A DNA stretch of 64,000 nt from Oopsacas minuta (GCA_024704765.1 JAKMXF010000343.1:434001-498000); one strand, 5' to 3'; shown: positions 9,418 through 51,950, counted from the stretch's first letter. Translations and numbers: made by a program. The notes: generated by a model from the sequence alone, not told the origin.

Positions 9418-10578
9418 ATGGCGAACAGATACATGGAAGAAATTCATATGTAGCTTTCGAAAAAGTGGAACAACTAATCCATTCCACATTCGAGGAGATC
9501 ATTAGAGTAGCGACCAAGAGGAGAGATCAACTGCTTGTCCAGCTGAATGATAAGAAGCAGAACTATTTGAAGAATGAGCAGATAAGGCAGAAACAATTAG
9601 CAAATCTGGAGAAGCTAATCAAACAATTGAATGAGACTAGCATCCAACAAAATACCATCGTGAAAGTCCAAGAGGAACAAGTGAAAAATTTAGAAGAAGA
9701 AAAGAAGAAATACAGAGATCCAACACCTATCCTAATCCCTACCTTCAATACTGAGGGTCTATACTCTCTCCTACAACAACTGGAGAAGTTGGGGTCTATT
9801 CAGGATATTGCTATACCCTATAGAAATGAGATTGGGCCAATAGAAGGATTAGGGAGGATGGCAAAATGAAAGAAGAATTGGATACCCCTCTTGGACTAGC
9901 TCTAGATAGAGAGAAGATCTATATAGCAGATTCAGGTAATAACAGAATACAGATCTTCTCTACAGAGGGTAAGTTCGTTCAAGGATTTGGTAAGGGGCAG
10001 CTATGTTCTCCATACGGTATAGCATTATATAACGAATGGGTGTTTATAAGTGATTGGGGAATTGATTCTATATTTAAAGTCTCTAAAAGAAATTACAAAT
10101 TCATTAAGAGTGTTAAAGGAGGTGTTAGTGTCCCTCGTGGTCTAACAACTGACACAAACGGAGAAGTGTTAGTTGCAGATTCTTTTAATAATAGAATTGC
10201 AGTATTCAGCGGTGATTTAAAATATATCATAGAAATAGGAAAAGACAAACTTATAAACCCCTGTGACGTCAAAATAAATAATAATTTGATATTTGTAGCA
10301 GACAAAAATGAGATTAATAATATACACAAATTCTCTAAATCAGGTGATTTGTTGCAAAGTTTCATAAAATTAGATGATGGAAGAGACTGTATTTTTATGT
10401 GTTTCGATTTGTATAATAATATTCTAATTAGTGATTGTTGGGGGAGTTGAATTCAGCTAGTTACTAAAGATGGACAGCTAATACACAAATTCAAGTTGTT
10501 GTTCCTACAGGAATAGTTGTTAATAATAACTCTAATATTATTTGTGGTAGTTCTGTTTCCGTGTTTGTATATTCTTAA
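9418..10578 (+). pseudogene. Coiled-coil + NHL-repeat gene, frameshifted
   Basis: ATG 9418 is out of frame with the coiled-coil ORF 9465-9869, which is out of frame with the NHL ORF 9866-10450 (PLGLALDREKIYIADSGNNRIQIF, PRGLTTDTNGEVLVADSFNNRIAVF); a further frame break precedes the stop at 10578. Confidence 0.8.
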
Positions 10579-28355: not shown

Positions 28356-29588
28356 TTAGTTTTGATATAAGAATATCTGTATACAGTGATTTGGATTTTG
28401 AGATACAACAATAATCCTTCCTTCGAAATCTAAAGCTATTCCTCTTGGTTTGATAAATTCTCCCATTTCTCTGCCTTCTCTACCTATTCCATGTATAAAA
28501 TCTCCTCCATTTGAGAACACACAAATACAATGAGAGCGATAATCGGAAATGAGAATATTGAATGATCTATCTAAAATGAAGAAATGGGGAAGAGTTACCG
28601 AAGTGCCCTTTCCCCAAGGTATAATCTCTCTAATCAGCTGATGAGAATATGAATAGAATGCTACACAAGGATTACGACAAGACAATACTACAATCTCTCC
28701 AGATGTTAGTACGATATCTCTAGCTCCATAAATATTATCAATACATGAATTAAATGTGAGATTCAAATTCAAACATTGAACTCTATTATTATCAAAGTCA
28801 GCGATATAAATCATGTCCATTGTAGGAGAGACAGCTAATCCCTTTGGCTTATCAAATTTCATTTTTTTCTTTCCTCTACCACCAATAGACTGTATAAGTT
28901 TCCCTTCTGTAGAGTATACATTGAGACGGTTTGAGCTATGCTGTATAACGTATACTACATTCTGTTTAACGCATATGCCAGCTGGTTGATCCATTTTCTC
29001 ACTGAATTCGGATAGGAACACAAAAGATTCGTCAAAAACTTGTACTCGATTGTTGCCTTCATCACCAATGTAAATACATTTGGTTGTAGGATTAATCGCA
29101 ATGCCTTGGGGATAGCAAAACGCACTTGGTGAATATCCTGCTATGCGATGGTTACCGAACGTAATTATAGGTTGTGTTTGTGTGTGTTTCTCTGGATTGA
29201 GTTGTGTGTTATCTGTTATTGATAGTTTAATTTCAAATTTAACATCCCATTCCAATTCTACAGTTTTGTATAAGTAATTTGATTTTTTGATTTTGTTTTC
29301 TAATTCTATAATTCGTGCATCAATGGGACTAGTACATGCTTTTAGTGTTTCATTTTCTTCGTTCCCTCTCAGAGCTGACACCAAATTGTCTTTTGTTATT
29401 GCCAAATTTGTAATCTGTTTTGATATTCCACCTCCTGTGTATTCATCTTCTAATCTCTCTAGTTCAGCTAAGAGATCAGCTTCCTTTTCTTGTAACTCTT
29501 TATGAGTTCTCGTAACCTTATCCTGTATTTCTCTACGCACTCTCACTAACTGGGAGAGGAAATTATCTTCTTGATCAACATTAGCCAT
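28356..29588 (-). CDS. Intact intronless coiled-coil + NHL-repeat (TRIM-NHL-like, no RING) protein
   Basis: ORF 28356-29624, likely start MANVDQ at 29588; coiled coil then NHL blades (FCYPQGIAINP..DEGNNRVQVF, FDKPKGLAVS..ADFDNNRVQ, FIKPRGIALD). Confidence 0.85.
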   Translation of the reverse strand: MANVDQEDNFLSQLVRVRREIQDKVTRTHKELQEKEADLLAELERLEDEYTGGGISKQITNLAITKDNLVSALRGNEENETLKACTSPIDARIIELENKIKKSNYLYKTVELEWDVKFEIKLSITDNTQLNPEKHTQTQPIITFGNHRIAGYSPSAFCYPQGIAINPTTKCIYIGDEGNNRVQVFDESFVFLSEFSEKMDQPAGICVKQNVVYVIQHSSNRLNVYSTEGKLIQSIGGRGKKKMKFDKPKGLAVSPTMDMIYIADFDNNRVQCLNLNLTFNSCIDNIYGARDIVLTSGEIVVLSCRNPCVAFYSYSHQLIREIIPWGKGTSVTLPHFFILDRSFNILISDYRSHCICVFSNGGDFIHGIGREGREMGEFIKPRGIALDFEGRIIVVSQNPNHCIQIFLYQN

Positions 29589-30834
29589 AATGACCTTGAG
29601 AGTGAAACAGTACAATAATCTCACAAAAGAATGGCTTATATTTTGCAGTTAATCTGCTAGTGAGATTGGTAATTTCAATACTGGTGGAACATACCATATT
29701 TCACTAAATAGCCCTGGGGGCCAGAGAAGGCTCCAAAATTTGTAAATAAAATTTGCTAACACCCTATAGAATAAATATTTTGATGAACTTTACGCCTCAG
29801 TTGACAATGCAGCAATTAGGATAAGTTAGGTTCTAAAATCATTGGTATTTTCTAAAGTTGCGAAAAAATCGACACGAAAAGAATAATTCCGGGAAATATG
29901 GTATTCCCTGATTATAGAAAGTTTTATTTATGTGTATTGGGTTTTACGTAGTAAAATCTCGCCAGCAGTGTTCCCTTTAAGCATTCCGCTGGGTATCCTC
30001 CTGATTTGTTGGTCTTTTTAGACCTAACCCCCCCCAGAAATTTAACATATTGAGTGCCTTCCCAGAGAGTTAGACTATTGGGTATGTAATGTATATTAAA
30101 GTGATTTATGGAAAGTCACATACACCTGTATATAGTGATTTACCTTTATTCGCTGCAGGAGTGATGAATGTGACAAGATTCAACCGTTTTGTACTACAGT
30201 AATCAAATCTAATTTACTGTATTATTCCCTAATGCTTTATACCTGTATTTTATTATTCCCAATTTCAAATAGAGTAGTACATATTCCTCTCGTAATATGA
30301 TCTAATTATTCCATATGACCATATCCCATATCCCATATCCCATAATTTATGCGTATAAACAGAGATCAAGATAAACCGAATTTGTTTATATTATCTTTAT
30401 GGACGGTGTCAGTATGCAACTTATAAAAATCTCAAATCACCGTATGTACCGACTTAGATTTTACCACAAGACCGCGAGCATAAACATCAGTAGAAATGAA
30501 CTCCATACGTTTACACATAAATTTACTGAAACTTGGAAGCAATTGACCTGTACGTATTCAAACAATTATAGTCTCACAGCTTTTAATCTATACTTCATAC
30601 TTTATATCCTATTACAATAAATAATATGTATAAATAGGATCAATGATTTGGGAGTGATTGAATTTATTATATAATTTCTATTCGATAGATTTATATGCAG
30701 TAGAACCTCTATAAGTTGGGGAGGTTGGGCCGGCGAATTTTCTGAGAACCCCCCCTTACCCATTTATAATTTCAAATGTAAATGTCCCTAATCAGAGATC
30801 TTTGAGTCAATATGTATAGCCACTTCCCCCAACC

Positions 30835-32902: not shown

Positions 32903-34113
32903 ATATAAGGTATTTGCTAACAAAATACTATTTTTACAATTTATACGTTCTTTTTGAGGACAAAATGATCCGATTTCAACTGTATTTGTTTCAGCTATAA
33001 TGCCTATACATATCATAATAACTTTCCACAGTAACGAAACCAGATTTAACATCCTAATGTTAACAATAAACAGTTTTATGTGATTCGAATACGTCACTAA
33101 TTGTTTATATGTTTAACAGAAATTATCGGAAAATAATGCAAGTCTGCTAACGGTCTGGGTTTAAAATGGGACTTCCCTGATTCACGAATGGATAAGTTTT
33201 CTTGACGAAATTTTAATTTGTCGTTTGTTGAAAGTCCGCCTAGAAACATTCCCTCTGTAATTTTCAATCTCCTTTTCTTGGCTAGAGGGAGGTATTTATG
33301 GTGCCGAAAGGTGGTCCATGAATGCTCGCAATTAGAAAAATGAAAAGTCATTCATGAGGTATTACTTGATATTTTATAGGTTTCGCTACGAATTTAAGAA
33401 AATTGATTACCGTGAAAAGTAAAAAGAAATACTTAACAACTGTCATGAAACAATATTCTGTGATTTACGTGCAAGGCTAAATGTGCAACAAACAACAAAT
33501 TTGAAATGTCTTCAAATAAAGTTGTCCGTTCCGTTGCCTGAATTACCCCCGAGTATTTGTGCTTTGCCTGTTTAATTTATGGAGCTATTTTCAGTGGAAT
33601 TGTATAAATCACAACCTTATTGGAAAGAGGTAATATACGTATATTAAGGGGAGATTACACATTTTGTCGAGAAATTTAAAAGCTTATTAGAATTAGTCTA
33701 GCCTAACAAATCGGGGTATTCAGCATTTTGCCACATTTTAAATATTCGAGTGTCAGGCAGGACATGACACTCAAAGCATTTCCGAAGAAGTAGGGCGTTC
33801 TGTCCAATCGTGATAGAAGTTAAGTTTGTGACTTCACGTTGATATTATTACGTATCGTGCTTGGTATTCAAACCTGGTCCTGTGTGGAAAAACTGAACCT
33901 GGAAAGGCTGATTGTTGGCATATAGGGGCATTTGGGGGCTGGATTGGACAAGATCAAGTCTTACCGATATATTTATTTAAATTTAAGTCATTTAACACAA
34001 TTCCCGGGATTTACCTAGACTTGTAATGTCGAGGGTGACAATACATCTAGCAAGCGACGCAGAACTAAGTGAATAATTATAATAGGTTATATACTAGCAT
34101 AGTCAAAATTCTC

Positions 34114-35046
34114 ATGAAAATTAATTTGTCACGAAGATATATCTACATCATTCTCATACTACTTGTTATTGAACATTTGGTACTATACAATTCTAACCCT
34201 CCAGATTACAGACCTGTAAACTGTGATGTTTTGAAAGCAACCCAACACATACAGATAGCAAAAACAACAATAAATTTAGCCACAACCACCAAATCACCAC
34301 ATCCAGAAATGTTTTTGTTCATAATTATATTAACAGCTCCAAGCAATTTTGGAACAAGACAAGTCATAAGAACCACATGGCTCAAAGATGTAGTCAAAAA
34401 CCCTAACATCAAATACAAATTTTTCGCTGGGACCAAGAACTTTTCACCAAGAAAGAAAGATTATCTTTCCAGAGAAACAAAACGAACTAAAGATATCGTT
34501 ATATTTGAAGACTTTGAGGAACATTACACAAGATTGACATATAAAATGTTAAGAATTATGAAATGGGTACAGCAAAATACAAATGCTCAATATTATTTGA
34601 AAGTTGATGATGATAGCTATTTAGTAGTTGAAAGGTTGATTAATATATTATTGAAGGAAGATTTACCAAAGAATAAATTTGCTATGGGGAGAGTCCATAA
34701 GAGGCCACTCAATGTTGCTAAAACTGGTAAATGGGCAGATGTTAATTGGATCTTATGTGAAGAGTATTTATCTTACCCAGTGGGTGCTGGTTATCTCCTC
34801 ACACAAGATCTAATGAAGTTTATCGCAATTAACAGCTATAGACTGGGTTTCCATATTAATGAAGATACAGCTATTGGAGCTTGGCTGGGGGGATTGAATT
34901 ACACATTACTGAATGATAATAGAATAATACCATATGGTGGTGAGGGGTGTGACAATAAAGTATTTATTCTACATAAACAGTCCCGAGTTTATTTACAACG
35001 AAGATACAAAATGTGGATAGCTAAAGGAACTGTTTGTACTGAATAG
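34114..35046 (+). CDS. B3GALT6: GT31 beta-1,3-galactosyltransferase, B3GALT6-like, intronless
   Basis: Type II membrane anchor; ILTAPSNFGTRQVIRTTW, YYLKVDDD (DxD), GKWADVNWILCEEYLSYPVGAGY, EDTAIGAWL and GCDNKVFILHKQS follow the B3GALT6 motif pattern. Orthology not tested. Confidence 0.8.
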   Translation: MKINLSRRYIYIILILLVIEHLVLYNSNPPDYRPVNCDVLKATQHIQIAKTTINLATTTKSPHPEMFLFIIILTAPSNFGTRQVIRTTWLKDVVKNPNIKYKFFAGTKNFSPRKKDYLSRETKRTKDIVIFEDFEEHYTRLTYKMLRIMKWVQQNTNAQYYLKVDDDSYLVVERLINILLKEDLPKNKFAMGRVHKRPLNVAKTGKWADVNWILCEEYLSYPVGAGYLLTQDLMKFIAINSYRLGFHINEDTAIGAWLGGLNYTLLNDNRIIPYGGEGCDNKVFILHKQSRVYLQRRYKMWIAKGTVCTE

Positions 35047-37667: not shown

Positions 37668-39306
37668 ATGGCCTCAGAGCCCCAAGAAGTAACCGCATCT
37701 CCGTTAGTTAAGCTAAACAACGGACTCACTATTCCTCAGCTAGGATTGGGAACATTTCTATCAGACAAAGGTCTGGTGGGTGAAGCTGTGAAGCAAGCTA
37801 TTAAGATGGGTAAGGAATTTATCGTTTACATAATTTATTCAGTTCATATTTGTCCCATTATTACGTTTATTGAATATTGGAGTTTTCGGGGGACTTCACA
37901 TGTTAGTAATGAGGAATCTCGTGGAATTTAGCACTTTTCGGATGGATATAATACTCTCAAAATATGTTTGGAGGATCGAGGCAATGATATCCGCACAGAA
38001 CCAACTCATTTTAATTAACAGAGCTTATAAATTAAAGGAGCTAAGCTTTCTATAGCCAGTGGTGTATTTATGGAAATAGTTTTTCACGGATTATGGATTT
38101 TTCTAAAAAATTTCAGTTATCTGAAGTCGATGTTACGCAATATGATAGCCTTTCCCGTATTTCATGCAAATATAATACCCTAAATATGTGTACAGTCAAT
38201 TTCCATTTATCGAAGCTCAAAGGACCGCTATAATTGCTTTGATATAACTGACGGAAATAATCTTACTTTTACGGTTTTGGCCATATTTGTAAATGATACT
38301 TGATATAAGCGGGTATTTCGTTATATCCGTGTACGATTTAACGGGAGCTGTCTGTATCTTGTTTTTTGTTATGTAATGTGGCATTGTTGTTGTTTGACTA
38401 AATTTTACACAATATCGCACTTCCTTACAAAACGTACGTTTAGGATATCGACACATTGACTGTGCTTGGGTGTACATGAACGAAGAGGAAGTAGGATCAG
38501 GAATAGATTGGGCTATTAACGAAGGAATTTGTAAGAGAGAGGATCTATTCATAACAACCAAACTAAGCGGTAGTCACTATAACGAGATTAAATGGGCATT
38601 AAATGACAGTCTGAAGAAACTGAGACTAGACTACGTAGATCTCTATTTGATTCATTTACCATTCGAAATGAAGAATGACCCCACAATTAAATCACTTGCT
38701 GACCTAAAGAAAGAACACTGTATCGGTTATAACGCCGAGAAAATGAGTAAAGTATGGAGTGAGTTGGAACAACTGGTTAGTGAAGGGCTAATACGAAGTA
38801 TCGGTGTATCTAACTTTACAATTAAAAAACTCGAGGCAATTCTAAAGACAGCAAAACTAATACCAGTCGTTAATCAAGTGGAGATACAGGCTTATTTCCA
38901 GCAGAATAAGCTCAGAAGTTATTGCAAGAGTAAAGGTATACTCATACAGGCTTTCAATACATTAGGAAATCCTGGACTTTTCAAAGGCAAGTTAGATGTG
39001 GAGCCACTCCTTGACAACGCAGAAGTGAAACAGGTATGTGAAAAACATAGAGCAACACCTGCACAAGTATGTATAGCATTTGGCCTTGCGATAGGGGATA
39101 TTCTGATACCTAAATCGGTTACTGAATCTCGTTTGAGAGAGAACTTTAAATCGATTAACCTAAAGCTAGATGAAGATGATGTGAAGAGACTGAAATCTTT
39201 AGACAAAAATCTCAGATTATATACCATGAAGGCATTCTGTGATCCAGCAGGTATCCCGTATGAAGAATTCTTTGATGTCGAGTTCGATTCTTCATACCAG
39301 ATTTAG
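37668..39306 (+). CDS. Aldo-keto reductase (AKR1-like), 2 exons, 334 aa
   Basis: Exons 37668-37809 and 38444-39306, phase consistent; LGLGT, GYRHIDCAWVY, LFITTK, DLYLIH (D-Y-K-H tetrad), SIGVSNF, NQVE, IPKS. Confidence 0.92.
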
Positions 39307-39510: not shown

Positions 39511-39671
39511 AAGTTGAGGTAGATCCCACTCCCTACGAAGCTGTTAAAATAATCGGTAACAAGGCGAGAACGAGCACAAAGACAACAGATGCTGTCATGA
39601 TACAGCGATTGCTGCCATAATATTCGTCAGAGATTATGTTGTGTATGGAAAATTCATGTAAATTGGATTAG
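39511..39671 (+). pseudogene. 3' relic of a sixth galactose-3-O-sulfotransferase copy
   Basis: KVEVDPTPYEAVKIIGNK..NEHKDNRCCHDTAI...MENSCKLD* aligns with the C-termini of the array genes, with frameshifts. Confidence 0.75.
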
Positions 39672-40447: not shown

Positions 40448-41713
40448 ATGTGGAAGAAAATTAAATCTGTAGTAAAAATATTTGGGATATTATCGCTTGT
40501 CGTAGTATTATTACTATTATTAGTCTCCCTTCCCTACATCAATGATAGAGGCCAGCAAAGCATATGCATTGAAAACTGCTATCAAATAATCTATTCAAAT
40601 ACAAGAGAAAGCTTTGTAGAAATAATTGATCAAAAAGATACGAACACTACATGGAGATGTGTAAATCCTGATTACATTGGTGATAATGCTAGAACTTCTG
40701 TAGCTCTACTAAAAGTACATAAAGCTGGGAGCACAACAATTGCTAGCATTCTATATCGATTTGGAATTCGTAGGAGATTAAGTTTTATAATGCAAAAGGA
40801 TGATACAATCCGATTTTGGCCAAAGACAATTGATAAAGCTTATAAAGGATTTTACCCTGCTTGTAGAGATAATAAATATGATATTCTGAATATTCACTCA
40901 AGATACAATGGTAGAGATATTCTAACTAAATATATGCGAGAAGATACGTACGTTATAGCACCTCTGAGACATCCAATGGATCAAATGATATCAGCGGTAT
41001 ATTACCACGGGTATATTAATCTCCTCGAAAAAATAAATAAAACATTTGAAGACTTCTTAGATAATCCAAATATATTAAATAAAGATACTGGAGTGGTATT
41101 GCTGACATGGAACTTAATGTCTTATGACATTGGATTAGATGATTTTGATATACCAAATGGAGTTAGCAAATCGTATCTTAAAAGTCAGCCAAAGTATATT
41201 AAGGAAATTGATAGGTTTTTAAATTGGACAGAAGAAAATATTGATTTCTTTTTGATTCGTGAGAAGTTTGATGAGTCATTGATTCTGTTGAAAGATCGGT
41301 TAGGTTGGAGAATAGAAGATTTAGTCTATTTCTCACTGAATACAGCTGCAGAGCCTCCAAAGAGGAACAGAAGGGATACGAATAGGCTTCGCATTAAAAC
41401 AGAGGAATTCTCATACATAGATTATCTACTCTATGAGAGGATGAAGCTGAAGCTGGATAGAATGATAGAGGAGAAAGGAGCTGAGTTAGAGGTAGAAGTG
41501 TCCAAACTGAGAAGTTTGAATAAGGAATTTTCAGAATATTGTCTGGAGAAAGTTGAGGTAGATTCCACTCTCTATGGAGCTGTTAAAATACTCGGTAACA
41601 AGGTGAAGAATGAGCACAAAGACAATAAGTGCTGTATCGAAACAGCGATTAGCGAAATTCCATATTCGGAAGATATCAAGAAGTTCATGGCGAATGATTG
41701 TAATTATTATTAA
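40448..41713 (+). CDS. Galactose-3-O-sulfotransferase family protein, copy A
   Basis: Type II TM anchor; 5'-PSB KVHKAGSTT; 3'-PB LRHPMDQMIS; IREKFDESLILLK (GAL3ST family). Confidence 0.9.
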   Translation: MWKKIKSVVKIFGILSLVVVLLLLLVSLPYINDRGQQSICIENCYQIIYSNTRESFVEIIDQKDTNTTWRCVNPDYIGDNARTSVALLKVHKAGSTTIASILYRFGIRRRLSFIMQKDDTIRFWPKTIDKAYKGFYPACRDNKYDILNIHSRYNGRDILTKYMREDTYVIAPLRHPMDQMISAVYYHGYINLLEKINKTFEDFLDNPNILNKDTGVVLLTWNLMSYDIGLDDFDIPNGVSKSYLKSQPKYIKEIDRFLNWTEENIDFFLIREKFDESLILLKDRLGWRIEDLVYFSLNTAAEPPKRNRRDTNRLRIKTEEFSYIDYLLYERMKLKLDRMIEEKGAELEVEVSKLRSLNKEFSEYCLEKVEVDSTLYGAVKILGNKVKNEHKDNKCCIETAISEIPYSEDIKKFMANDCNYY

Positions 41714-41737
41714 ACTATTTCATTATGTGTTTTGAAG

Positions 41738-42367
41738 GGATCTGTATATTTTGATCGAATTTTTGTAGAACTTTGATCAAATTTTCTTATGTCGAACTTT
41801 GATCGAATGATGAAAAAGGCAAATTTTGATCAAAGTTCTACTAAAATGTCTCCAGTCGAACTTTGATCGAAAAATTGTAGAATTTTGATCGAAAATGGGA
41901 ACTTTGATCGAAAATGGAGAAAATACAACAAAAAAATCCAACGATACGCCATTTTACAAAGATTAATAATAATCAATCCAAAAAACTCCATCCAATCATA
42001 AAGTTAGCATAAATTCCACACTCCCGTGCTTTAGTAGCTAATAACGAACACAAATAAATACTCCCAGAGCCATAAGGTAGCGAAATAAATCCCTAATCCC
42101 CTTGCAATGGTACTCTTTCTAATTAATAAAATATAAAGTGAGTGTGGAATTTATGCTAACTTTATGATTGGATGGAGTTTTTTGGATTGATTATTATTAA
42201 TCTTTGTAAAATGGCGTATCGTTGGATTTTTTTGTTGTATTTTCTCCATTTTCGATCAAAGTTCCCATTTTCGATCAAAATTTGCCTTTTTCATCATTCG
42301 ATCAAAGTTCGACATAAGAAATTTTGATTAAAGTTCTACAAAAAATTCGATCAAAATATACAGATAC
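41738..42367. mobile_element. Foldback-type long-TIR element
   Basis: Arms 41738-42023 and 42140-42367 are inverted around a 116-bp spacer; multiple GAACTTTGATCGAA-type motifs; exact 8-bp TSD TTTTGAAG. Confidence 0.85.
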
Positions 42368-43093
42368 TTTTGAAGTTAAGAGCATACACATGTACATATT
42401 AAAATGCATAAAGGAAGTCTGGAAAAGTATATTACACATCTACTATATTATTAAATCTCAATTCTTGTCTATGTGTGTTTCTTTGTCAGTTTGTCCGTTG
42501 TCAAGGAAAGGATTTAAGGTATGCTCTTTTGAGTTGAATTTCTCAATTCAAAGTTGTCGCATAAATATGTGCGTATTTATCCGTTTACCAACAAAATAAA
42601 AATAATTCAATAAAGCTTGAATAAATAAATATTTCACACTTCTGGATTAATCATTTGTAAATTGATTTGTTGTTTTTATGAATATAATGTAAACAAATAA
42701 TAGGAAATCTCAAAGTATGTCTCAACTTGCTCTCAACAGGGACGGGTAACAAAGGTGGAATACGAATTTCGCATTTCATGTTTCTTATATGTAAATTTAT
42801 TGTTATTGTTATGATACATAGAGTAAAAGTATAAACCTGAATGCTGGATCTGACCTAATTACTACCCGAAGGGGCTGTAAATTTGGATAATAAGGGATAC
42901 CTCTAGTAGGAGCAAAGCGATGGGCAAAATAGTTGTAATTATGAATAACGAATTTTGACAAATATATCTTCATCATATTTAAGCATCATTCGATAATTGG
43001 TAAGTAAGGCTCAGAACTTTGTACATTTAGCAACCTTCTGCGCACAATAATCTTGGGTAGAAATTCACCAATTAGTATACTATTAAGAATAAT

Positions 43094-43174
43094 AAAACCT
43101 CAAATCATCGTCTGTGCTGACTTAAAATTGTATTGAGGAAATTTAAGTCGGCACAGAAGATGATTTGAGATTTT
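43094..43174. repeat. Short hairpin / mini inverted repeat
   Basis: CTCAAATCATCGTCTGTGCTGACTTAAA versus TTTAAGTCGGCACAGAAGATGATTTGAG (26/28); a related half site lies at about 50020-50057. Confidence 0.7.
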
Positions 43175-43253
43175 TAGAACTGAGTGAGGATGTAATAGTA
43201 TTAGTCAGCATAGTAAAAATATACACAGTAACTTATAAACAATATTTGAAAAT

Positions 43254-44594
43254 TCAATCCAATCCACAAGAATTAGCCATATATTTCTTAATTTCTCCAA
43301 CATACTGCAACTCATTGAGGGCCGTCTGATGACAGCACTTATTGTCTTTGTGCTCATTCTTCACCTTGTTACCGAGTATTTTAACAGCTCCATAGAGAGT
43401 GGGATCTACCTCAACTTTCTCCAGACAATATTCTGAAAATTCCTTATTCAAACTTCTCAGTTTGGACACTTCTACCTCTAACTCAGCTCCTTTCTCCTCT
43501 ATCATTCTATCCAGCTTCAGCTTCATCCTCTCATAGAGTAGATAATCTATGTATGAGAATTCCTCTGTTTTAATGCGAAGCCTATTCGTATCCCTTCTGT
43601 TTCTTTTTGGAGGCTCTGCAGCTGCATTCAGTGAGAAATAGACTAAATCTTCTATTCTCCAACCTAACCGATCTTTCAACAGAATCAATGACTCATCAAA
43701 CTTCTCACGAATCAAAAAGAAATCAATATTTTCTTCTGTCCAGTTTAAAAACCTATCAATTTCCTTAATATACTTTGGTTTACTTATAAGATACGACTTT
43801 TTAGATCCTTTTGGTATATCAAAATCATCTAATCCAATAACACTAGACATTGAGTTCCACATCAATCTCATTGCAAGAGGATCGTTGGTTAATATATTAG
43901 GATTGTCTAAGAATTCCTCAATTGTTTTACCCATCTTTTTGAGTTTATTAATATACCCGTAGTAATATAGCCCTGACATCATTTGATCCATTGGATGTCT
44001 CAGAGGTGCTATAACGTACGTATCCTCTCGCATATAATTAGTTAGAATATCTCTACCATTGTATCTTGAGTGAATATTCAGAATATCATATTTATCATCT
44101 CTACAAGCAGGGTAAAATCCTTTATAAGCTTTATCAATTGTCTTTGGCCAAAATTGATGTGTATTATCCTTTTGCATTATAAAACTTAATCTTCTACGAA
44201 TTCCAAATCGATATAGAATGCTAGCAATTGTTGTACTCCCAGCTTTATGTACTTTTAGTAGAGCTACAGAAGTTCTAGCATTATCACCAATGTAATCAGG
44301 ATTTACACATCTCCATGTAGTGTTCTCTTGCTCTGGATCATTTATATGTACAATACTTTCTTGTGTTACATTCGTTACGTTATGTTCATATCCATGTATT
44401 TGTACAACAATGCTTCCATTTGTGTTGTGTACAACTGATTGATGTATTGTATGATCCTCCTCATTTCCATGTATATCTTGTTGTTTGGCTTTTCTGAGAA
44501 AATGAAGGGCAGATAAAGTTAACAACATGATAACAATAACTAGTAAGAGATACCATCTGAGTTTTGATGTGGCTACTGGTGTTGACTTTTCCAT
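43254..44594 (-). CDS. Galactose-3-O-sulfotransferase family protein, copy B
   Basis: Likely start MEKSTP at 44594; same motifs as copy A. Confidence 0.9.
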   Translation of the reverse strand: MEKSTPVATSKLRWYLLLVIVIMLLTLSALHFLRKAKQQDIHGNEEDHTIHQSVVHNTNGSIVVQIHGYEHNVTNVTQESIVHINDPEQENTTWRCVNPDYIGDNARTSVALLKVHKAGSTTIASILYRFGIRRRLSFIMQKDNTHQFWPKTIDKAYKGFYPACRDDKYDILNIHSRYNGRDILTNYMREDTYVIAPLRHPMDQMMSGLYYYGYINKLKKMGKTIEEFLDNPNILTNDPLAMRLMWNSMSSVIGLDDFDIPKGSKKSYLISKPKYIKEIDRFLNWTEENIDFFLIREKFDESLILLKDRLGWRIEDLVYFSLNAAAEPPKRNRRDTNRLRIKTEEFSYIDYLLYERMKLKLDRMIEEKGAELEVEVSKLRSLNKEFSEYCLEKVEVDPTLYGAVKILGNKVKNEHKDNKCCHQTALNELQYVGEIKKYMANSCGLD

Positions 44595-45822
44595 TAAGTA
44601 ATTAATGTATTTGATTATAACAGTTGCTTCCGTATATTGGAACGCTATATAGCAATTAATATAGTTGGGAACAACCAAATACATTCAAATATGACGTAGT
44701 GAAGAACGATTGTTTTGATGGGAGAAATTTTAAAGGGCTTCGCAATGCAATGGAGGCTGCCTCAGACTTGCTAGGCATAATAACTATCGGTAGATTTTCG
44801 GGCTACTGATAATTATTGGGTCCAGGTCTCCCATGGTGATGCAGCCAAATTGTACATTTATCAAATAAAAATAATTCTGGAATAAATACAACAAAAATTT
44901 GATGTATTGAATATTTTTTTCCTTAAATACTTGTAGACGCCTGGACAGCCTGGTGTACAATCAGTCAGCTCGTGTTATTAACTTATTATACGCCGCGTCG
45001 GCTGTTTCGTCGTCAATTGCGTAACTAGAATTGATTGCCTCCTCGTTTTTTCGGTCGTTGCCCCATTTCCCTATTGTGTTCGACTGTTAGCCATTTATTG
45101 AGGCAATTATTCATCCTTGGTTCTTCGCTCTGAGATCTCTGGTTGCGCCATACCTGTACATTTACTTAAATAGTTGAATTTTTACGTTGTTTTTGGGCAT
45201 TTCAAAATGGATTCTCCGCCGACTCGTAGGCCTAAACTTCCCGATAAATTCTATATAGGGCTCTGATTCTTATATATTGTAATTTGACATTATGAATTCA
45301 ATTACTAGAATATTCAAATCAATGCTATTATAATGCAATATACATATTGGAAACCAGGATTGGAGCCATAAATGAAACTATTAGCAGAATAGAATGGTAG
45401 ATTATACTAGCAATGATTCACATGAATAATATTAAAACAAAGGCGACATATGAATTCAAATCGCGAAACGAACAAGACTGAAATGCTTGCATTTAAGTAT
45501 ATAGCATGGCATAAATCCCGGTGATGGAGGGCTATATCCCAATCGGTTTGAGGAATATTGGAGATTTCTGATTTACAATACCAAATTATCAAATTTCGAA
45601 TCAAGTTTCCACTGTTAATGGGAATTTGATAATAAAGTTTGAGCGAATATATATTAACGCAAAATCTTGAAATATAATGTTACATATTTGCTGCAAAAAA
45701 TGTAGTATTTTACAAAAATTTTCGAAAAATAATGATAAAGTTACATAACCAGAGGTAACCTAAACTGTTAATCATATTTCAATTTAGATATTAGGAAATA
45801 TACCAAATCGAGAGTAATCCGT

Positions 45823-47118
45823 TTAATTCAATTTACAAGAATTATTCATATAAGCCTTAACTTCATTAAGTAATGATTTCTCTTCAATCGCTGTTTCAAT
45901 ACAACATCTATCATTTTTTCGCTCATTCTTCAACTTATTGCTAAGTATATTTACAGCTCCGAGAAGGTTTGGATCTACCTCAACTTTATCCAGACAATAT
46001 TCTGAAAATTCCTTATTCAAACTTCTCAGTTTGGACACTTCTACCTCTAACTCAGTTCCTTTCTCCTCTATCATTCTATCCAGCTTCAGCTTCATCCTCT
46101 CATAGAGTAGATAATCTATGTATGAGAATTCCTCTGTTTTAATGCGAAGCCTATTCGTATCCCTTCTGTTCCTCTTTGGAGGCTCTGCAGCTGTATTCAG
46201 TGAGAAATAGACTAAATCTTCTATTCTCCAACCTAACCGATCTTTCAACAGAATCAATGACTCATCAAACTTCTCACGAATCAAAAAGAAATCAATATTT
46301 TCTTCTGTCCAATTTAAAAACCTATCAATTTCCTTCACAAATCTTGATTGACTTGTAAGATACGATTTTTTAACACCTTTTGGTATATTAAATAGACTTA
46401 ATCCGAGATCATAGGACATTGAGTTCCACATCAGCCTCATCACATCAGGATTTTTATCTGTTAACATATTAGGATAGTTTAAGAAGTCTTCGATTGTTTT
46501 TCCCATTCTTTCTAGGCGATTAACATATCCAAAGAAATTTAACGCTGATATCATTTGATCCATTGGATGTCTCAGAGGTGCTATAACGTACGTATCCTCT
46601 CGCATATATTTAGTTAGGATATCTCTACCATTGTATCTTGAGTGAATAGTCAGAATATCATATTTATTATCTCTACAAGCAGGGTAAAATCCTCTATAAA
46701 CATTATCAATAGTGTTAGGCCAAAATTGATAAAGTTTAGACTTTTTAGGCATTATAAAACTTAACCCTCTACGAATTCCAAATCGATATAGAATGCTTCC
46801 AATTGTTGAACTCCCAGTTTTATGTACTTTTAGTAGAGCTACAGAAGTTCTAGCATTATCACCAATGTAATCAGGATTTACACATCTCCATGTAGTGTTC
46901 TCTTGCTCTGTACCGTTAGGTTTAGGAATTTCTACTATGGTGTTCGTTGTATTTGTTACAACCGTTACATTCGAATTATTTGATTGATGTAAATGCTTAT
47001 CGTGTTTGTCCTCCTGTTTGATTTTTCTGACCAAATGAAGTGCAGATAAAGTTAGCAACACGACTATTATCCCTAATAATATCCACCATTTCATTCCAAA
47101 TTTAATAGATTTTTCCAT
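45823..47118 (-). CDS. Galactose-3-O-sulfotransferase family protein, copy C
   Basis: KVHKTGSST, LRHPMDQMIS; intact ORF. Confidence 0.9.
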   Translation of the reverse strand: MEKSIKFGMKWWILLGIIVVLLTLSALHLVRKIKQEDKHDKHLHQSNNSNVTVVTNTTNTIVEIPKPNGTEQENTTWRCVNPDYIGDNARTSVALLKVHKTGSSTIGSILYRFGIRRGLSFIMPKKSKLYQFWPNTIDNVYRGFYPACRDNKYDILTIHSRYNGRDILTKYMREDTYVIAPLRHPMDQMISALNFFGYVNRLERMGKTIEDFLNYPNMLTDKNPDVMRLMWNSMSYDLGLSLFNIPKGVKKSYLTSQSRFVKEIDRFLNWTEENIDFFLIREKFDESLILLKDRLGWRIEDLVYFSLNTAAEPPKRNRRDTNRLRIKTEEFSYIDYLLYERMKLKLDRMIEEKGTELEVEVSKLRSLNKEFSEYCLDKVEVDPNLLGAVNILSNKLKNERKNDRCCIETAIEEKSLLNEVKAYMNNSCKLN

Positions 47119-48015
47119 AATTTAGTTACCAAGTTAATGCAGATACACAAATAAAAGTATAAGAATAATACATCCTGATGTGATTTGGATTCTTATGAGT
47201 GTATCTATTATTATTATCATACTGTTATACATCTGCCTATATTTCCCTTTTGCTTGTTTATTCATCTCTATTCTGCAGTATACGAGTATTTGATGAAGTA
47301 ATATAATACTTTGGAAATCTTGTCTTGTTTAGTGAACTTCCTGAGTTATACTCTTCTATATCATTAATGTATAGGTTAAAATACGAGGATACTCAGGAAA
47401 CTCTGGAGAGTTTGTTGTATTGTCCACGTTTCAACACTTTATCTTGGACATATGAGTTTTGGCGTCTGCTGGCTTGGATATTGGAGGTTCAGGCAACAAT
47501 TTGAAGACTAGCATATATATATTTGGCATAATATACCCATAATACCTCTAAAGGACAGGTTTGTAAAACCTATAGTTTGGTAGGATTTCCGGACTCTTAT
47601 AAAATGATGATAATTCATATATTAATAATAATATTTAGAGAATTTGTTAGTCACTCGGGAAAGCACAGCGAAAGCAAAATGAAAGTAGTACGGAATTTTC
47701 CATAGATACGTCTTGATTCATATAAAATGGAGCAGCAAACAAACACATGCCATACATTCAATATAGGTTTCAGCAGAAAAAGTCGTGCGGCAATTGCCAG
47801 ACCGGCTCCACTGGCCAGTTGGGACTATGTGATAACCACCTTGAAATTCCACTTTTAATTGATCAAAACAGCTTTTAGAAAGCGCCAGATTGTATTATAT
47901 GGTAAACAGACTTAAGCCTGTTCGTGGAGATAAGACCAGTGGAAATAAGCGGATGCATAATGTATCATCTTTTGTTAATATAAGTAATGATTTGCATAAT
48001 ATATGAGTACGTAAT

Positions 48016-49278
48016 TTAAAACCTTACACAAGATTTCTTCATATATTTCTTAACTTCTTCCACATATGGTAACTCATTAATAGCTGTCTCATGGCAACAG
48101 ATATCATCTCTTCGAACATCCTTTACCCTATTGTCAAGTATATTTACAGCTCCATAGAGAGTGGGATCTATCTCAACATTATCCAGACAATATTCTGAAA
48201 ATTCCTTATTCAAACTTCTCAGTTTGGACACTTCTACCTCTAACTCAGCTCCTTTCTCCTCTATCATTCTATCCAGCTTCAGCTTCATCCTCTCATAGAG
48301 TAGATAATCTATGTATGAGAATTCCTCTGTTTTAATGCGAAGCCTATTCGTATCCCTTCTGTTCCTCTTTGGAGGCTCTGCAGCTGTATTCAGTGAGAAA
48401 TAGACTAAATCTTCTATTCTCCAACCTAACCGATCTTTCAACAGAATCAATGACTCATCAAACTTCTCACGAATCAAAAAGAAATCAATATTTTCTTCTG
48501 TCCAATTTAAAAACCTATCAATTTCCTTAATATACTTTGGTGTACTTATAAGATACGACTTTTTAGATCCTTTTGGTATATCAAAATCATCTAGTCCGAT
48601 AACACTAGACATTGAGTTCCACACCAATCTCATTACAAGAGGATCGTTGGTTAATATATTAGGATTGTCTAAGAATTCCTCAATTGTTTTACCCATCTTT
48701 TTGAGTTTATTAATATACCCGTAGTAATTTAGCCCTGACATCATTTGATCCATTGGATGTCTTAGAGGTGCTATAACGTACGTATCCTCTCGCATATATT
48801 TAGTTAGAATATCTCTACCATTGTATCTTGAGTGAATATTCAGAATATCATATTTATCATCTCTACAAGCTGGGTAAAATCCTTTATAAGCTTTATCAAT
48901 TGTCTTTGGCCAAAATTGATGTGTATTATCCTTTTGCATTATAAAACTTAATCTTCTACGAATTCCAAATCGATATAGAATGCTAGCAATTGTTGTACTC
49001 CCAGCTTTATGTACTTTTAGTAGAGCTACAGAAGTTCTAGCATTATCACCAATGTAATCAGGATTTACACATCTCCATCTAGTGTTCTCTATATATTGTA
49101 TTCCTACAGTACTCTTTGCTGTAATGGTTACATTAGTATCACTTGGATAATACCATTGTCCATATAAGATGTCTTCCTGGTTAACTTTTTTGAGGAAATG
49201 GAATTTGTTTAAAGTTAGCAAAAATATTAGTAGAAATAATAGTATAAAAATCAGCTTTTTGATGTTTGAATTTTTCAT
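48016..49278 (-). CDS. Galactose-3-O-sulfotransferase family protein, copy D
   Basis: KVHKAGSTT, LRHPMDQMMS; intact ORF. Confidence 0.9.
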   Translation of the reverse strand: MKNSNIKKLIFILLFLLIFLLTLNKFHFLKKVNQEDILYGQWYYPSDTNVTITAKSTVGIQYIENTRWRCVNPDYIGDNARTSVALLKVHKAGSTTIASILYRFGIRRRLSFIMQKDNTHQFWPKTIDKAYKGFYPACRDDKYDILNIHSRYNGRDILTKYMREDTYVIAPLRHPMDQMMSGLNYYGYINKLKKMGKTIEEFLDNPNILTNDPLVMRLVWNSMSSVIGLDDFDIPKGSKKSYLISTPKYIKEIDRFLNWTEENIDFFLIREKFDESLILLKDRLGWRIEDLVYFSLNTAAEPPKRNRRDTNRLRIKTEEFSYIDYLLYERMKLKLDRMIEEKGAELEVEVSKLRSLNKEFSEYCLDNVEIDPTLYGAVNILDNRVKDVRRDDICCHETAINELPYVEEVKKYMKKSCVRF

Positions 49279-49919
49279 ATTTTACTATAGAATTGCTCTT
49301 TCTATACATATTCTTATCTCTTTGTACTCTATGTATGGTAATACAATAAATCAATCCAATGTGCATTATTCCGGTCTAGAATTTCTTTTTCGACATTTCT
49401 TGAACAAACGTACGAAAGGCGAGACCAAAGCTTAATGAGAATAGAGGGATTACTTTCCTAGATATCTGGACCACGCACACACAGTGCTACTAAACACATC
49501 AGAATCTATAATATATGAAGAGTTATGAGTGAAATTATAGCCTTTATTCACAGATTTAGTTGAAAATCAAGAGTTTTAATACTTGGCACGGGCAAAGAAT
49601 GAAAAATCTTGTTTCGAAAATTATCTTCTTAGTCTTAATTGACACAAATAAAAACTACAATATTTGAAGTAGTGAGTTACATAATTATAATGCTAATGGG
49701 AAAATACAAACTCAACACATATATATGATGGTAATAAAGAAAAAAATGGAAATACTTAGAAAAAACTGTTAAATTTTCTATCAAATTGCTAATGTGCGTA
49801 GCGTAAGCCGCGAATAGTAGAGGGAATGAATCGCGAACAACAAAACAAAACACAAAATATCATCCGCGAATTGTCGAAAGCGCGAACGGCGAGGACTGCC
49901 TGTATACGTATTACAGATA

Positions 49920-50564
49920 GGTAAGTAGCCACAAATAATATAAGAGAAGCGAAGCCAGTATTATAATCTCATAAAAGTAGATTCCATCCCAATTTTTGTG
50001 GATTAAACTTTTTAGGTTTCAAAAATCTAAAATCAGCGTCTGTGCCGACTTAAATTTTACCAAATTTTAGCAAAGAAAGATAAAATTGAATTTTATAATC
50101 TTGTTAGACAGTTAATAATGTCAAAATAGGATTATACGTCCCTGTTTATCCCTATTTAACAAGTGGAAGCTAATCTCTAGGATAATTTTGAAATGTTCAC
50201 CAAAAGGTGTAAAATATGATTAATCACATGATAACTTTGTATATATATATAATACAATGTATATAGATCACTTGAATCACAGTCTACAATCAATACAAAA
50301 TACATTACAATGCTAATTAAATGACATAAACTCCACCAGAACTAATCTTATGCACTTACGCCTAATTGTAAACCCTACAATCTGATTGGGCTAAAAGGTG
50401 TCAAAAGGTGTGAAAATATACAGATTTAAAATTTTTCTAATATGTATATTTGAATTCAGATTTTTTAACCTTGAAAGTTCAATCCACACAATTGGGGTCT
50501 GATTTTACTTTTAGGAGATATATTAACTGGCTTTCTTCTGAATTCGTTTGTCGGCTACTTTCCC
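49920..50564. mobile_element. Old long-TIR non-autonomous element
   Basis: About 140-bp degenerate inverted arms (GGTAAGTAGCC...GAAGCCAGT...CTCATAAAAGTA...TTGTGGATT versus their complement at about 50425-50564); no TSD identified. Confidence 0.6.
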
Positions 50565-50669
50565 ATCCCTATTACAGTGTATGTACTTAAAATGTTACCA
50601 TGATAGTATCACAAACTATAAGAAATATTAAAATTAGGAAGACACATATGTATACGTTTCAGTAGGAAA

Positions 50670-51950
50670 ATGAAAAAATCAATATTAGACATCAGATGGT
50701 GGCGCATATCAGCTATAATGATTGTGTTGCTAACTTTATTCGCCCTTGATTTCCTCAGAACTATTCAGCAAGATACACATAGCATGCACTGGCATCAAAC
50801 ATATAATCCGCTTGTAACTACACCAAAAGACAGTATTGTGGATTTACTCCATCGAAACGGTACAGAGCAAGAGAACACTGCATGGAGATGTGTAAATCCT
50901 GATTACATTGGTGATAATGCTAGAACTTCTGTAGCTCTACTAAAAGTACATAAAACTGGGAGTTCAACAATTGGAAGCATTCTATATCGATTTGGAATTC
51001 GTAGAGGGTTAAGTTTTATAATGCCTAAAAAAGTATCTAGTTATGAATATTGGCCAAAAACTATAGATAAGTGTTATCAAGAATTCTACCCTCCTTGTCA
51101 ACAGGGCAGATTTGATATTCTGAATATTCACTCAAGATACAATGGTAGAGATATTCTAACTAAATATATGCGAGAAGATACGTACGTTATAGCACCTCTG
51201 AGACATCCAATGGATCAAATGATATCAGGGCTATATTTTTACGGATTTGTCAATCGGCTTAAAATGATAAGTAAAACAATTGAAGATTTCTTAGAACATC
51301 CTAATATATTAACAGATGAAGATCCTGCAGTAATGTGGTTTATGTGGAACTCAATGTCTTATGACATCGGATTAGACGATTTTGATATACCAAAAGGCGT
51401 TAAAAAATCGTATCTTATAAGTAAACCAAAGTATATTAAGGAAATTGATAGGTTTTTAAATTGGACGGAGGAAAATATTGATTTCTTTTTGATTCGTGAG
51501 AAGTTTGATGAGTCATTGATTCTGTTGAAAGATCGGTTAGGTTGGAGAATGGAAGATTTAGTCTATTTCTCACTGAATACAGCTGCAGAGCCTCCAAAGA
51601 GGAACAGAAGGGATACGAATAGGCTTCGCATTAAAACAGAGGAATTCTCATACATAGATTATCTACTCTATGAGAGGATGAAGCTGAAGCTGGATAGAAT
51701 GATAGAGGAGAAAGGAGCTGAGTTAGAGGTAGAAGTGTCCAAACTGAGAAGTTTGAATAAGGAATTTTCAGAATATTGTCTGGAGAAAGTTGAGGTAGAT
51801 CCAAACCTTCTCGGAGCTGTTAATGTACTCAGCAACAAATTGAAGAACGAGCACAAACATGATAGATGTTGCTTTGAAACGGCTATTGATGAGAAGCCAT
51901 ATTACAACTTTATTAAGGCGTATATGCGTAATTCCTGTAAATTGAGTTGA
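50670..51950 (+). CDS. Galactose-3-O-sulfotransferase family protein, copy E
   Basis: KVHKTGSST, LRHPMDQMIS; intact ORF. Confidence 0.9.
   Translation: MKKSILDIRWWRISAIMIVLLTLFALDFLRTIQQDTHSMHWHQTYNPLVTTPKDSIVDLLHRNGTEQENTAWRCVNPDYIGDNARTSVALLKVHKTGSSTIGSILYRFGIRRGLSFIMPKKVSSYEYWPKTIDKCYQEFYPPCQQGRFDILNIHSRYNGRDILTKYMREDTYVIAPLRHPMDQMISGLYFYGFVNRLKMISKTIEDFLEHPNILTDEDPAVMWFMWNSMSYDIGLDDFDIPKGVKKSYLISKPKYIKEIDRFLNWTEENIDFFLIREKFDESLILLKDRLGWRMEDLVYFSLNTAAEPPKRNRRDTNRLRIKTEEFSYIDYLLYERMKLKLDRMIEEKGAELEVEVSKLRSLNKEFSEYCLEKVEVDPNLLGAVNVLSNKLKNEHKHDRCCFETAIDEKPYYNFIKAYMRNSCKLS

Follow-up and report, generated by a model that had tools for sequence, protein, structure and literature searches.

The window described here is a stretch of 64,000 nucleotides from the genome of the hexactinellid sponge Oopsacas minuta (GCA_024704765.1, JAKMXF010000343.1:434001-498000). 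At positions 40448-51950 it carries five intact, intronless open reading frames (ORFs) of 420-476 amino acids in the order +, -, -, -, +, called genes A to E. None of them requires an intron, and all five proteins match the Gal-3-O-sulfotransferase (Gal3ST) profile PF06990, with E values of 1e-37 to 1e-41 and scores of 128-142 bits against a gathering cut-off of 27. As an earlier, preliminary description had proposed, the five paralogs alternate along their length between blocks nearly identical in DNA and blocks that differ strongly. Very probably this is an old tandem array in which three constant blocks (C1, C2 and C3) have been kept near-identical by repeated interlocus non-crossover gene conversion, while the variable blocks (V1, V2 and V3), the stem and the flanks keep their old divergence.

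Gene A (40448-41713, + strand) encodes 421 amino acids and has a PF06990 match with an E value of 1.6e-38. Genes B (43254-44684), C (45823-47118, 431 amino acids) and D (48016-49278, 420 amino acids) lie on the - strand, and gene E (50670-51950, 426 amino acids) is again on the + strand. Gene B most likely starts at an internal methionine (MEKST..., 44594) rather than at 44684; the database-predicted protein for this gene has 446 amino acids.

The five proteins have one layout in common: a hydrophobic N-terminal helix leads into a stem that is poorly conserved and contains N-x-T sites, and the catalytic domain then starts at WRC. The genes are predicted to encode Golgi-type (type II membrane) Gal-3-O-sulfotransferases. 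The AlphaFold2 model of the gene A protein, calculated with 41 homologs, has a mean predicted local distance difference test score (pLDDT) of 82, a long N-terminal helix and a disordered segment at residues 34-69. The modeled fold is that of a sulfotransferase dependent on 3'-phosphoadenosine 5'-phosphosulfate (PAPS). Structural superposition with VIA-align gave a Z-score of 13.5 to the heparan sulfate 6-O-sulfotransferase 5t03 (225 residues aligned) and of 12.8 to the heparan sulfate 2-O-sulfotransferase 4ndz; a solved structure of any Gal3ST was looked for and none was found. Across 41 members of the family, with identities as low as 21%, residues K89, H91, R174 and S182 do not vary, and K92, G94, S95 and T97 are conserved in at least 90% of the proteins. 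On the basis of general knowledge of sulfotransferases, we take K89, H91, K92, G94, S95 and T97 to form the 5'-phosphosulfate loop (K.HK.GS.T), and R174 and S182 to belong to the 3'-phosphate motif.

Constant and divergent blocks

The ten gene pairs were compared in sliding windows of 60 nucleotides, and the rates of nonsynonymous (dN) and synonymous (dS) substitution were calculated block by block using the Nei-Gojobori method. The windows contain 0-3 differences in C1, C2 and C3 and 10-28 elsewhere. In gene A, the stem (40448-40651) is followed by C1 (40652-40792), V1 (40793-40879), C2 (40880-40987), V2 (40988-41200), C3 (41201-41545) and V3 (41546-41710), although the homogenized tract extends past the end of C3 to about 41563. 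The same order is found in gene E, with C1 at 50883-51023, V1 at 51024-51113, C2 at 51114-51221, V2 at 51222-51437, C3 at 51438-51782 and V3 at 51783-51947. On the opposite strand, the blocks of gene B are C1 (44175-44315), V1 (44088-44174), C2 (43980-44087), V2 (43767-43979), C3 (43422-43766) and V3 (43260-43421); those of gene C are C1 (46750-46890), V1 (46660-46749), C2 (46552-46659), V2 (46336-46551), C3 (45991-46335) and V3 (45829-45990); and those of gene D are C1 (48937-49077), V1 (48850-48936), C2 (48742-48849), V2 (48529-48741), C3 (48184-48528) and V3 (48022-48183).

Genes A and E differ at only 3 of 363 nucleotides between 41201-41563 and 51438-51800 (at 41230, 41233 and 41314), exactly the number counted in the preliminary description. 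The longest stretch that is invariant in the five genes spans 114 ungapped columns; when an equal number of variable sites was placed at random, the longest stretch averaged 18 columns and never exceeded 40 in 5000 trials. The constant-block pattern is thus far beyond chance.

Synonymous divergence is not uniform along the genes. Between paralogs, dS is 0-0.13 in C1, C2 and C3, where dN/dS is uninformative, and 0.4-2.0 in V1, V2 and V3, with a dN/dS of 0.19-0.79 that mostly lies between 0.2 and 0.6. Pairs that have exchanged sequence recently fall outside this range: B-D over the whole of V1 and V2, and in V1 also A-B and A-D. For the stem, dS is 0.6-2.2 and dN/dS 0.3-1.1. The V2 dS among genes A-E, 0.4-0.66, is somewhat lower than that between species. 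A dN/dS above 1 was not seen in V1-V3, these being averages over blocks from which single sites may differ. Since the V blocks have a high dS as well as a high dN, they are not hypervariable, and in this respect the preliminary description, which had proposed diversified cassettes, is not borne out: they show ordinary old paralog divergence under moderate constraint. It is the constant blocks, not the V blocks, that need explaining.

Apart from two repeat fragments of 37-43 nucleotides, there is no alignable non-coding homology between the copies. Sequence has therefore been exchanged within the coding regions alone, and the identity cannot stem from segmental duplication.

The PAPS-binding motifs lie in constant blocks. 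C1 contains the 5'-phosphosulfate loop KVHK.GS.T, C2 terminates in the 3'-phosphate motif LRHPMDQM.S, and C3 spans KEIDRF to EFSEYCL, including the family-invariant E..FDES and D325. All of the invariant residues K89, H91, R174, S182, E272, E276 and D325 are situated within C1, C2 or C3 or at their edges, and G229 is the sole family-invariant residue within V2. In the AlphaFold2 model, V1 comes after the helix downstream of the 5'-phosphosulfate loop, and V2 forms a series of short helices immediately after the 3'-phosphate-binding helix. The corresponding regions contribute to the acceptor site in other sulfotransferases. The V cassettes may therefore tune the choice of acceptor, so that the array may represent several enzymes with a common PAPS-binding core.

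The relationships between the copies change along the gene. Genes A, B and D have a common V1, B and D a common V2, and A and B a common start of V3; gene B resembles D from C1 to the end of V2, and A over the first ~90 nucleotides of V3. The protein alignment contains every peptide block and grouping quoted in the preliminary description, with A, B and D set against C and E at the HK.GS motif, B and D joined in the middle, and A with B and C with E at the start of the C-terminus. A permutation version of a Sawyer-type test, devised for this analysis, found the longest runs of concordant polymorphic sites to be 33 for A-B and 38 for B-D (permutation p <= 2e-4, the global value being likewise <= 2e-4). 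Among the five genes, a clade of A and B is rejected by V2 (p 0.004), and in the tree of the first 90 nucleotides of V3 these two genes group together with support of 86/94. The switching of relationships that had been read from the sequence is thus confirmed by both the site runs and the trees.

Two dispersed copies elsewhere in the genome, L006 and L007, were compared as possible outside donors of V cassettes, and neither is the donor. L006 has a dS above 1.5 everywhere, and L007 is 5-8% diverged in C3 and 25-50% in V2; both are thereby rejected also as members of the recent homogenization. The contig that carries L007 (C33; loci L007 and L009/L024) has a dispersed broken Gal3ST copy, in which 4 stop codons interrupt the N-terminal half and the C-terminal part is an open ORF of 226 amino acids on the other strand.

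Upstream of gene A there is an aldo-keto reductase (AKR) ORF or exon (38470-39306, +; PF00248, E value 2.7e-45), which flanks the array and serves as a synteny marker. Between it and gene A, a segment of 100 nucleotides (39511-39610, +) covering the end of C3 and the start of V3 is 85% identical in blastn to nucleotides 1103-1203 of gene A. It is nearest to genes A and B and is probably a remnant of the 3' end of a sixth Gal3ST copy. An ORF of the beta-1,3-galactosyltransferase family (34069-35046, +; PF01762, E value 1.8e-31) is situated 5.4 kb upstream of the array; a functional link is possible, in which this enzyme would make the galactose acceptor for the array enzymes. ORFs with NHL-repeat beta-propellers are found at 28356-29624 (-) and 9866-10450 (+). 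The spacer between genes D and E contains a high-copy repeat (~50032-50420), where the Logan word depth is ~6000 (baseline ~70) and joints and loose ends are numerous; a 37-nucleotide inverted match lies at 43139-43175. The repeat is also deep in run X5, which is from another organism, and is probably a small transposable element.

Related sponges and a second subfamily

Homologous loci were taken from three related assemblies, ERZ25069837 (sp1), ERZ25071281 (sp2) and ERZ26869290 (sp3). An AKR gene lies beside Gal3ST in loci L017/L018 and L020 and NHL-repeat genes in L019 and L021, and the Gal3ST loci are therefore syntenic with that of O. minuta. One contig of sp1 (ctg26759, L017/L018) has a palindromic duplication, each arm of which is ~10 kb long and comprises a Gal3ST gene, an ORF weakly matching RAG1 (RNase-H-like, Transib-type) and an AKR gene; the two Gal3ST copies encode identical proteins.

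The dS of C3 is 0.62-0.97 between this genome and sp1-3, and 0.17-0.29 among sp1, sp2 and sp3. Paralogs of this genome differ in C3 by a dS of 0-0.08. In each related assembly the value is 0.03-0.06 for genes with V2 cassettes that are a dS of 1.0-1.9 apart. The synonymous sites of C3 are therefore free to change, yet the paralogs of one species change together. An example is the disordered loop at residues 300-309 within C3 (pLDDT below 50): the five copies of the window all have EPPKRNRRDTNRL, and the nine genes from the other species all have (N/S)PP(E/D)RN(N/D)VDT(D/N)TL. By comparison, the V2 and V3 cassettes of sp1-3 orthologs have a dN of 0.04-0.09, a dS of 0.2-0.6 and a dN/dS of 0.13-0.3, showing that they are old, constrained sequence types rather than fast-evolving ones.

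The trees of the two kinds of block are discordant across species. In the V2+V3 tree, one gene each from sp1, sp2 and sp3 forms a cross-species "type II" clade with support of 100/100, and the clade of every single species is rejected by the approximately unbiased (AU) test (p 3e-8 to 4e-6). In the C2+C3 tree, the genes group by species instead (this genome 95/89, sp2 98/99), and the type II clade is rejected (p 1.5e-6). Cassettes older than the species are thus established for sp1-3. For genes A-E such an age is suggested by the alignment: among the columns diagnostic of the types in sp1-3, A, B and D lean towards type I and C and E towards type II by 5-6 columns against 1, which is not significant, and the motif LLGAV.ILSNKLKNE is common to C, E and type II.

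The borders of C3 were located by listing the differences between type I and type II genes, in nucleotide positions of gene A. In this genome (A against C), the last dense difference before C3 is at 753 and the first after it at 1117, with isolated differences at 1033 and 1101. The corresponding positions are 754 and 1117 in sp1 (isolated difference at 762), 754 and 1123 in sp2 (two earlier differences at 1098 and 1100), and 754 and 1119 in sp3 (isolated differences at 762 and 765); the L22-L19a pair of sp3 retains scattered differences within the tract. The borders at ~754 and ~1117 thus agree to roughly 20 nucleotides in four species, and therefore are not random tract ends. The mosaic may descend from the common ancestor and persist through a homology cliff, or selection may act against any overwriting of cassettes; the data agree with both.

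On contig C309, the O. minuta genome carries another Gal3ST subfamily, whose members are 28-31% identical to gene A. It consists of three tandem genes (L023) and two further genes (L011 and L013) 100-160 kb away. The stem has a dS of 0.5-1.8, one identical pair excepted. The cassette right after the 3'-phosphate motif VRNP.SQL.S, equivalent to V2, has a dS of 1.1-2.2 (0.58 in one pair), the next ~300 nucleotides, equivalent to C3, have a dS of 0.04-0.18, and the C-terminus has a dS of 1.2-2.0 that is lower in two pairs. With the genes labeled a to e, relationships switch in this subfamily as well, a and d agreeing in the cassette, a and b in the 3' end, and d and e in the stem, also between copies 100-160 kb apart. 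The constant/variable layout is hence a property of the Gal3ST family in this genome that recurs in two subfamilies.

Origin of the constant blocks

The O. minuta assembly is a SPAdes hybrid that combines Illumina reads with PacBio reads after their correction; it was then polished with Pilon (PMC10280926), a step that could erase small differences between paralogs. Multi-mapped short reads may in principle have made similar paralogous stretches identical, or the assembly graph may have been mis-threaded at shared nodes. Logan unitigs, built from raw reads of the same sample, contain V2 of gene C (46306-46572) and its stem and spacer (46881-47908) as unique pieces, and around gene D the pieces 47879-48208, 48529-48769 (V2) and 49055-49583. 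They cover V2 of genes C and D, the stems and the spacers uniquely and end within ~30 nucleotides of the borders of the constant blocks, which appear with only a few alternative letters, as would be expected of sequence that several copies really have in common. The identity is therefore present in the reads and is not a product of polishing. Run X5 contains only parts of the constant blocks, at 95-99% likeness. No RNA run turned up among the sequencing runs found to contain sequence of the array. An artefact of this kind is highly improbable, since the same pattern is found in three independent assemblies of other species and in the second array of this genome, and cross-mapping is unable to create such blocks beside 25-40% divergence. 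A constraint at the level of DNA or RNA, for example an embedded RNA element, an antisense gene or a regulatory site, would account for identity that includes synonymous sites and for the sharp block borders. It is hardly conceivable as the cause, being refuted by the dS of 0.62-0.97 that the same blocks show against the relatives and by species-specific substitutions common to all paralogs of one species. Recent duplication of whole genes, followed by very fast change limited to the V blocks through positive selection or targeted mutation, would agree with the weak monophyly of the V blocks of genes A-E (61/88) and with a V2 dS among them somewhat below that between species. The synonymous divergence of the V blocks is nevertheless as expected under constraint, neither the stem nor any of the flanks can be aligned, which makes the duplications old, and in the relatives cassettes are common to several species and so predate the homogenized blocks. 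Such a history is very unlikely.

The remaining proposals accept conversion and assign it a purpose. According to the preliminary description, recombination in the constant blocks reassorts the acceptor-contacting cassettes into a combinatorial glycan-sulfation repertoire for self/non-self or symbiont recognition. In accord with it, cassette relationships switch both in this array and in that of contig C309, and the same positions are variable in two subfamilies 28% identical to each other, V2 beginning right after the 3'-phosphate-binding motif in both. On the other hand, dN/dS exceeds 1 in no block except the unconstrained stem, the conservation of cassettes between orthologs speaks for a few stable types and not for ongoing diversification, and passive homology-limited conversion predicts the same pattern. 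This adaptive version is unlikely. A related proposal, which stops short of recognition, considers the layout to be a conserved system of constant and variable modules, with borders held across at least four hexactinellid lineages and the two 28%-identical subfamilies. Selection would protect the acceptor-specifying cassettes and recombination in the core would reassort them, making conversion a generator of glycan-sulfation diversity; we regard it as rather unlikely.

Homogenization of C1-C3 by interlocus non-crossover conversion accounts for the observations with high probability. Within the tracts, paralogs are closer to each other than to their orthologs, the trees of different blocks are incongruent, and concordant sites occur in runs, which together characterize concerted evolution; the earlier proposal that conversion homogenizes the scaffold thus holds. 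The copies in opposite orientation (A and E against B, C and D) are homogenized equally, which fits non-crossover conversion and disfavors unequal crossing-over. Conversion tracts would start and resolve within the most conserved blocks. They would be halted either because sequence homology falls off sharply where the old V cassettes begin, or because the replacement of one cassette by another of different function is selected against, two causes that are inseparable here. The stem, V1, the ~70 amino acids of V2 after the 3'-phosphate motif, the C-terminal V3 and the non-coding flanks would in this way retain their old divergence.

Several points weigh against this interpretation. A signature of GC-biased conversion has been used in other studies, but the GC content at third codon positions (GC3) shows no consistent excess in the constant blocks, with values of 0.12, 0.27 and 0.40 for C1, C2 and C3 and of 0.16, 0.29 and 0.37 for V1, V2 and V3, respectively. 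The groups compared in the AU tests were named after the alignment had been seen, which weakens the nominal p-values, although not the size of the effect. In the V-block trees, neither the monophyly of the O. minuta genes (support 61/88) nor a grouping of C and E with type II (p 0.29) is rejected, so that for genes A-E these trees agree with cassettes either older or younger than the species split. Finally, the SPAdes/Pilon assembly is the basis for the final 1-2% of identity. It is also the basis for the way in which cassettes are phased across the 345-nucleotide C3, since contigs from the raw reads do not bridge the blocks.

Comparison with known systems

Sponges are known for sulfated glycans, and the array is a well-bounded case of region-restricted concerted evolution in a sponge family of glycan-modifying enzymes. 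As it stands, it shows neither a new mechanism nor a recognition code. Whole-gene Gal3ST trees of hexactinellids will mislead, as the V cassettes carry the history of the genes and the core carries that of the species. The sharp borders shared between species mark V1, V2 and V3 as natural swap units for experiments on acceptor specificity. The array is also a compact system in which to ask whether selection or the homology cliff alone holds the borders of conversion.

The vertebrate enzymes GAL3ST1-4 are cerebroside and glycoprotein Gal-3-O-sulfotransferases. Like the sponge proteins, they belong to PF06990, have the same PAPS-binding motifs and are laid out as type II membrane proteins whose catalytic domain is luminal, although the sponge genes are only 22-29% identical to them. 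The vertebrate genes are dispersed and contain introns, and they are not known to evolve in concert. A literature search for papers linking Gal3ST, sponges and gene conversion found none, and the O. minuta genome paper makes no mention of sulfation, tandem arrays or gene conversion (PMC10280926).

Region-restricted conversion in tandem arrays is already well described. In the clustered protocadherins of teleosts (fugu Pcdh2 and zebrafish), regional gene conversion has left 3' parts more than 99% identical beside divergent 5' parts in a lineage-specific manner (PMC1852091). Both systems consist of tandem single-exon variable units, of which one part is near-identical including synonymous sites and another divergent, both are lineage-specific, and in both the trees must come from the unconverted part. 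The regional conversion in teleosts was reportedly described by Noonan et al. in 2004, as cited in the protocadherin paper. Unlike the protocadherins, in which variable first exons are spliced to constant exons, the Gal3ST genes are complete and independent. They have three homogenized blocks interleaved with three variable ones in place of one 3' region, they show no clear rise in GC3, and their tract borders are common to four species.

The persistence of divergence under conversion also has a precedent. A "peak of divergence" in exon 5 of the human red and green opsins was described by Teshima and Innan (2008), and according to a review both theory and the opsin case indicate that divergence can persist as islands against conversion (PMC3924837). 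As in the Gal3ST array, conversion keeps the opsin duplicates similar except in certain regions, which in the opsins surround sites of maintained functional difference. The array differs in having long divergent cassettes (87-216 nucleotides) with saturated dS rather than a narrow peak around a few sites, and selection is one of two possible causes of its borders. The array is accordingly a further case of a familiar kind of gene-family evolution, noteworthy for its three interleaved tracts, for borders common to four species and for the recurrence of the same layout in two distant subfamilies.

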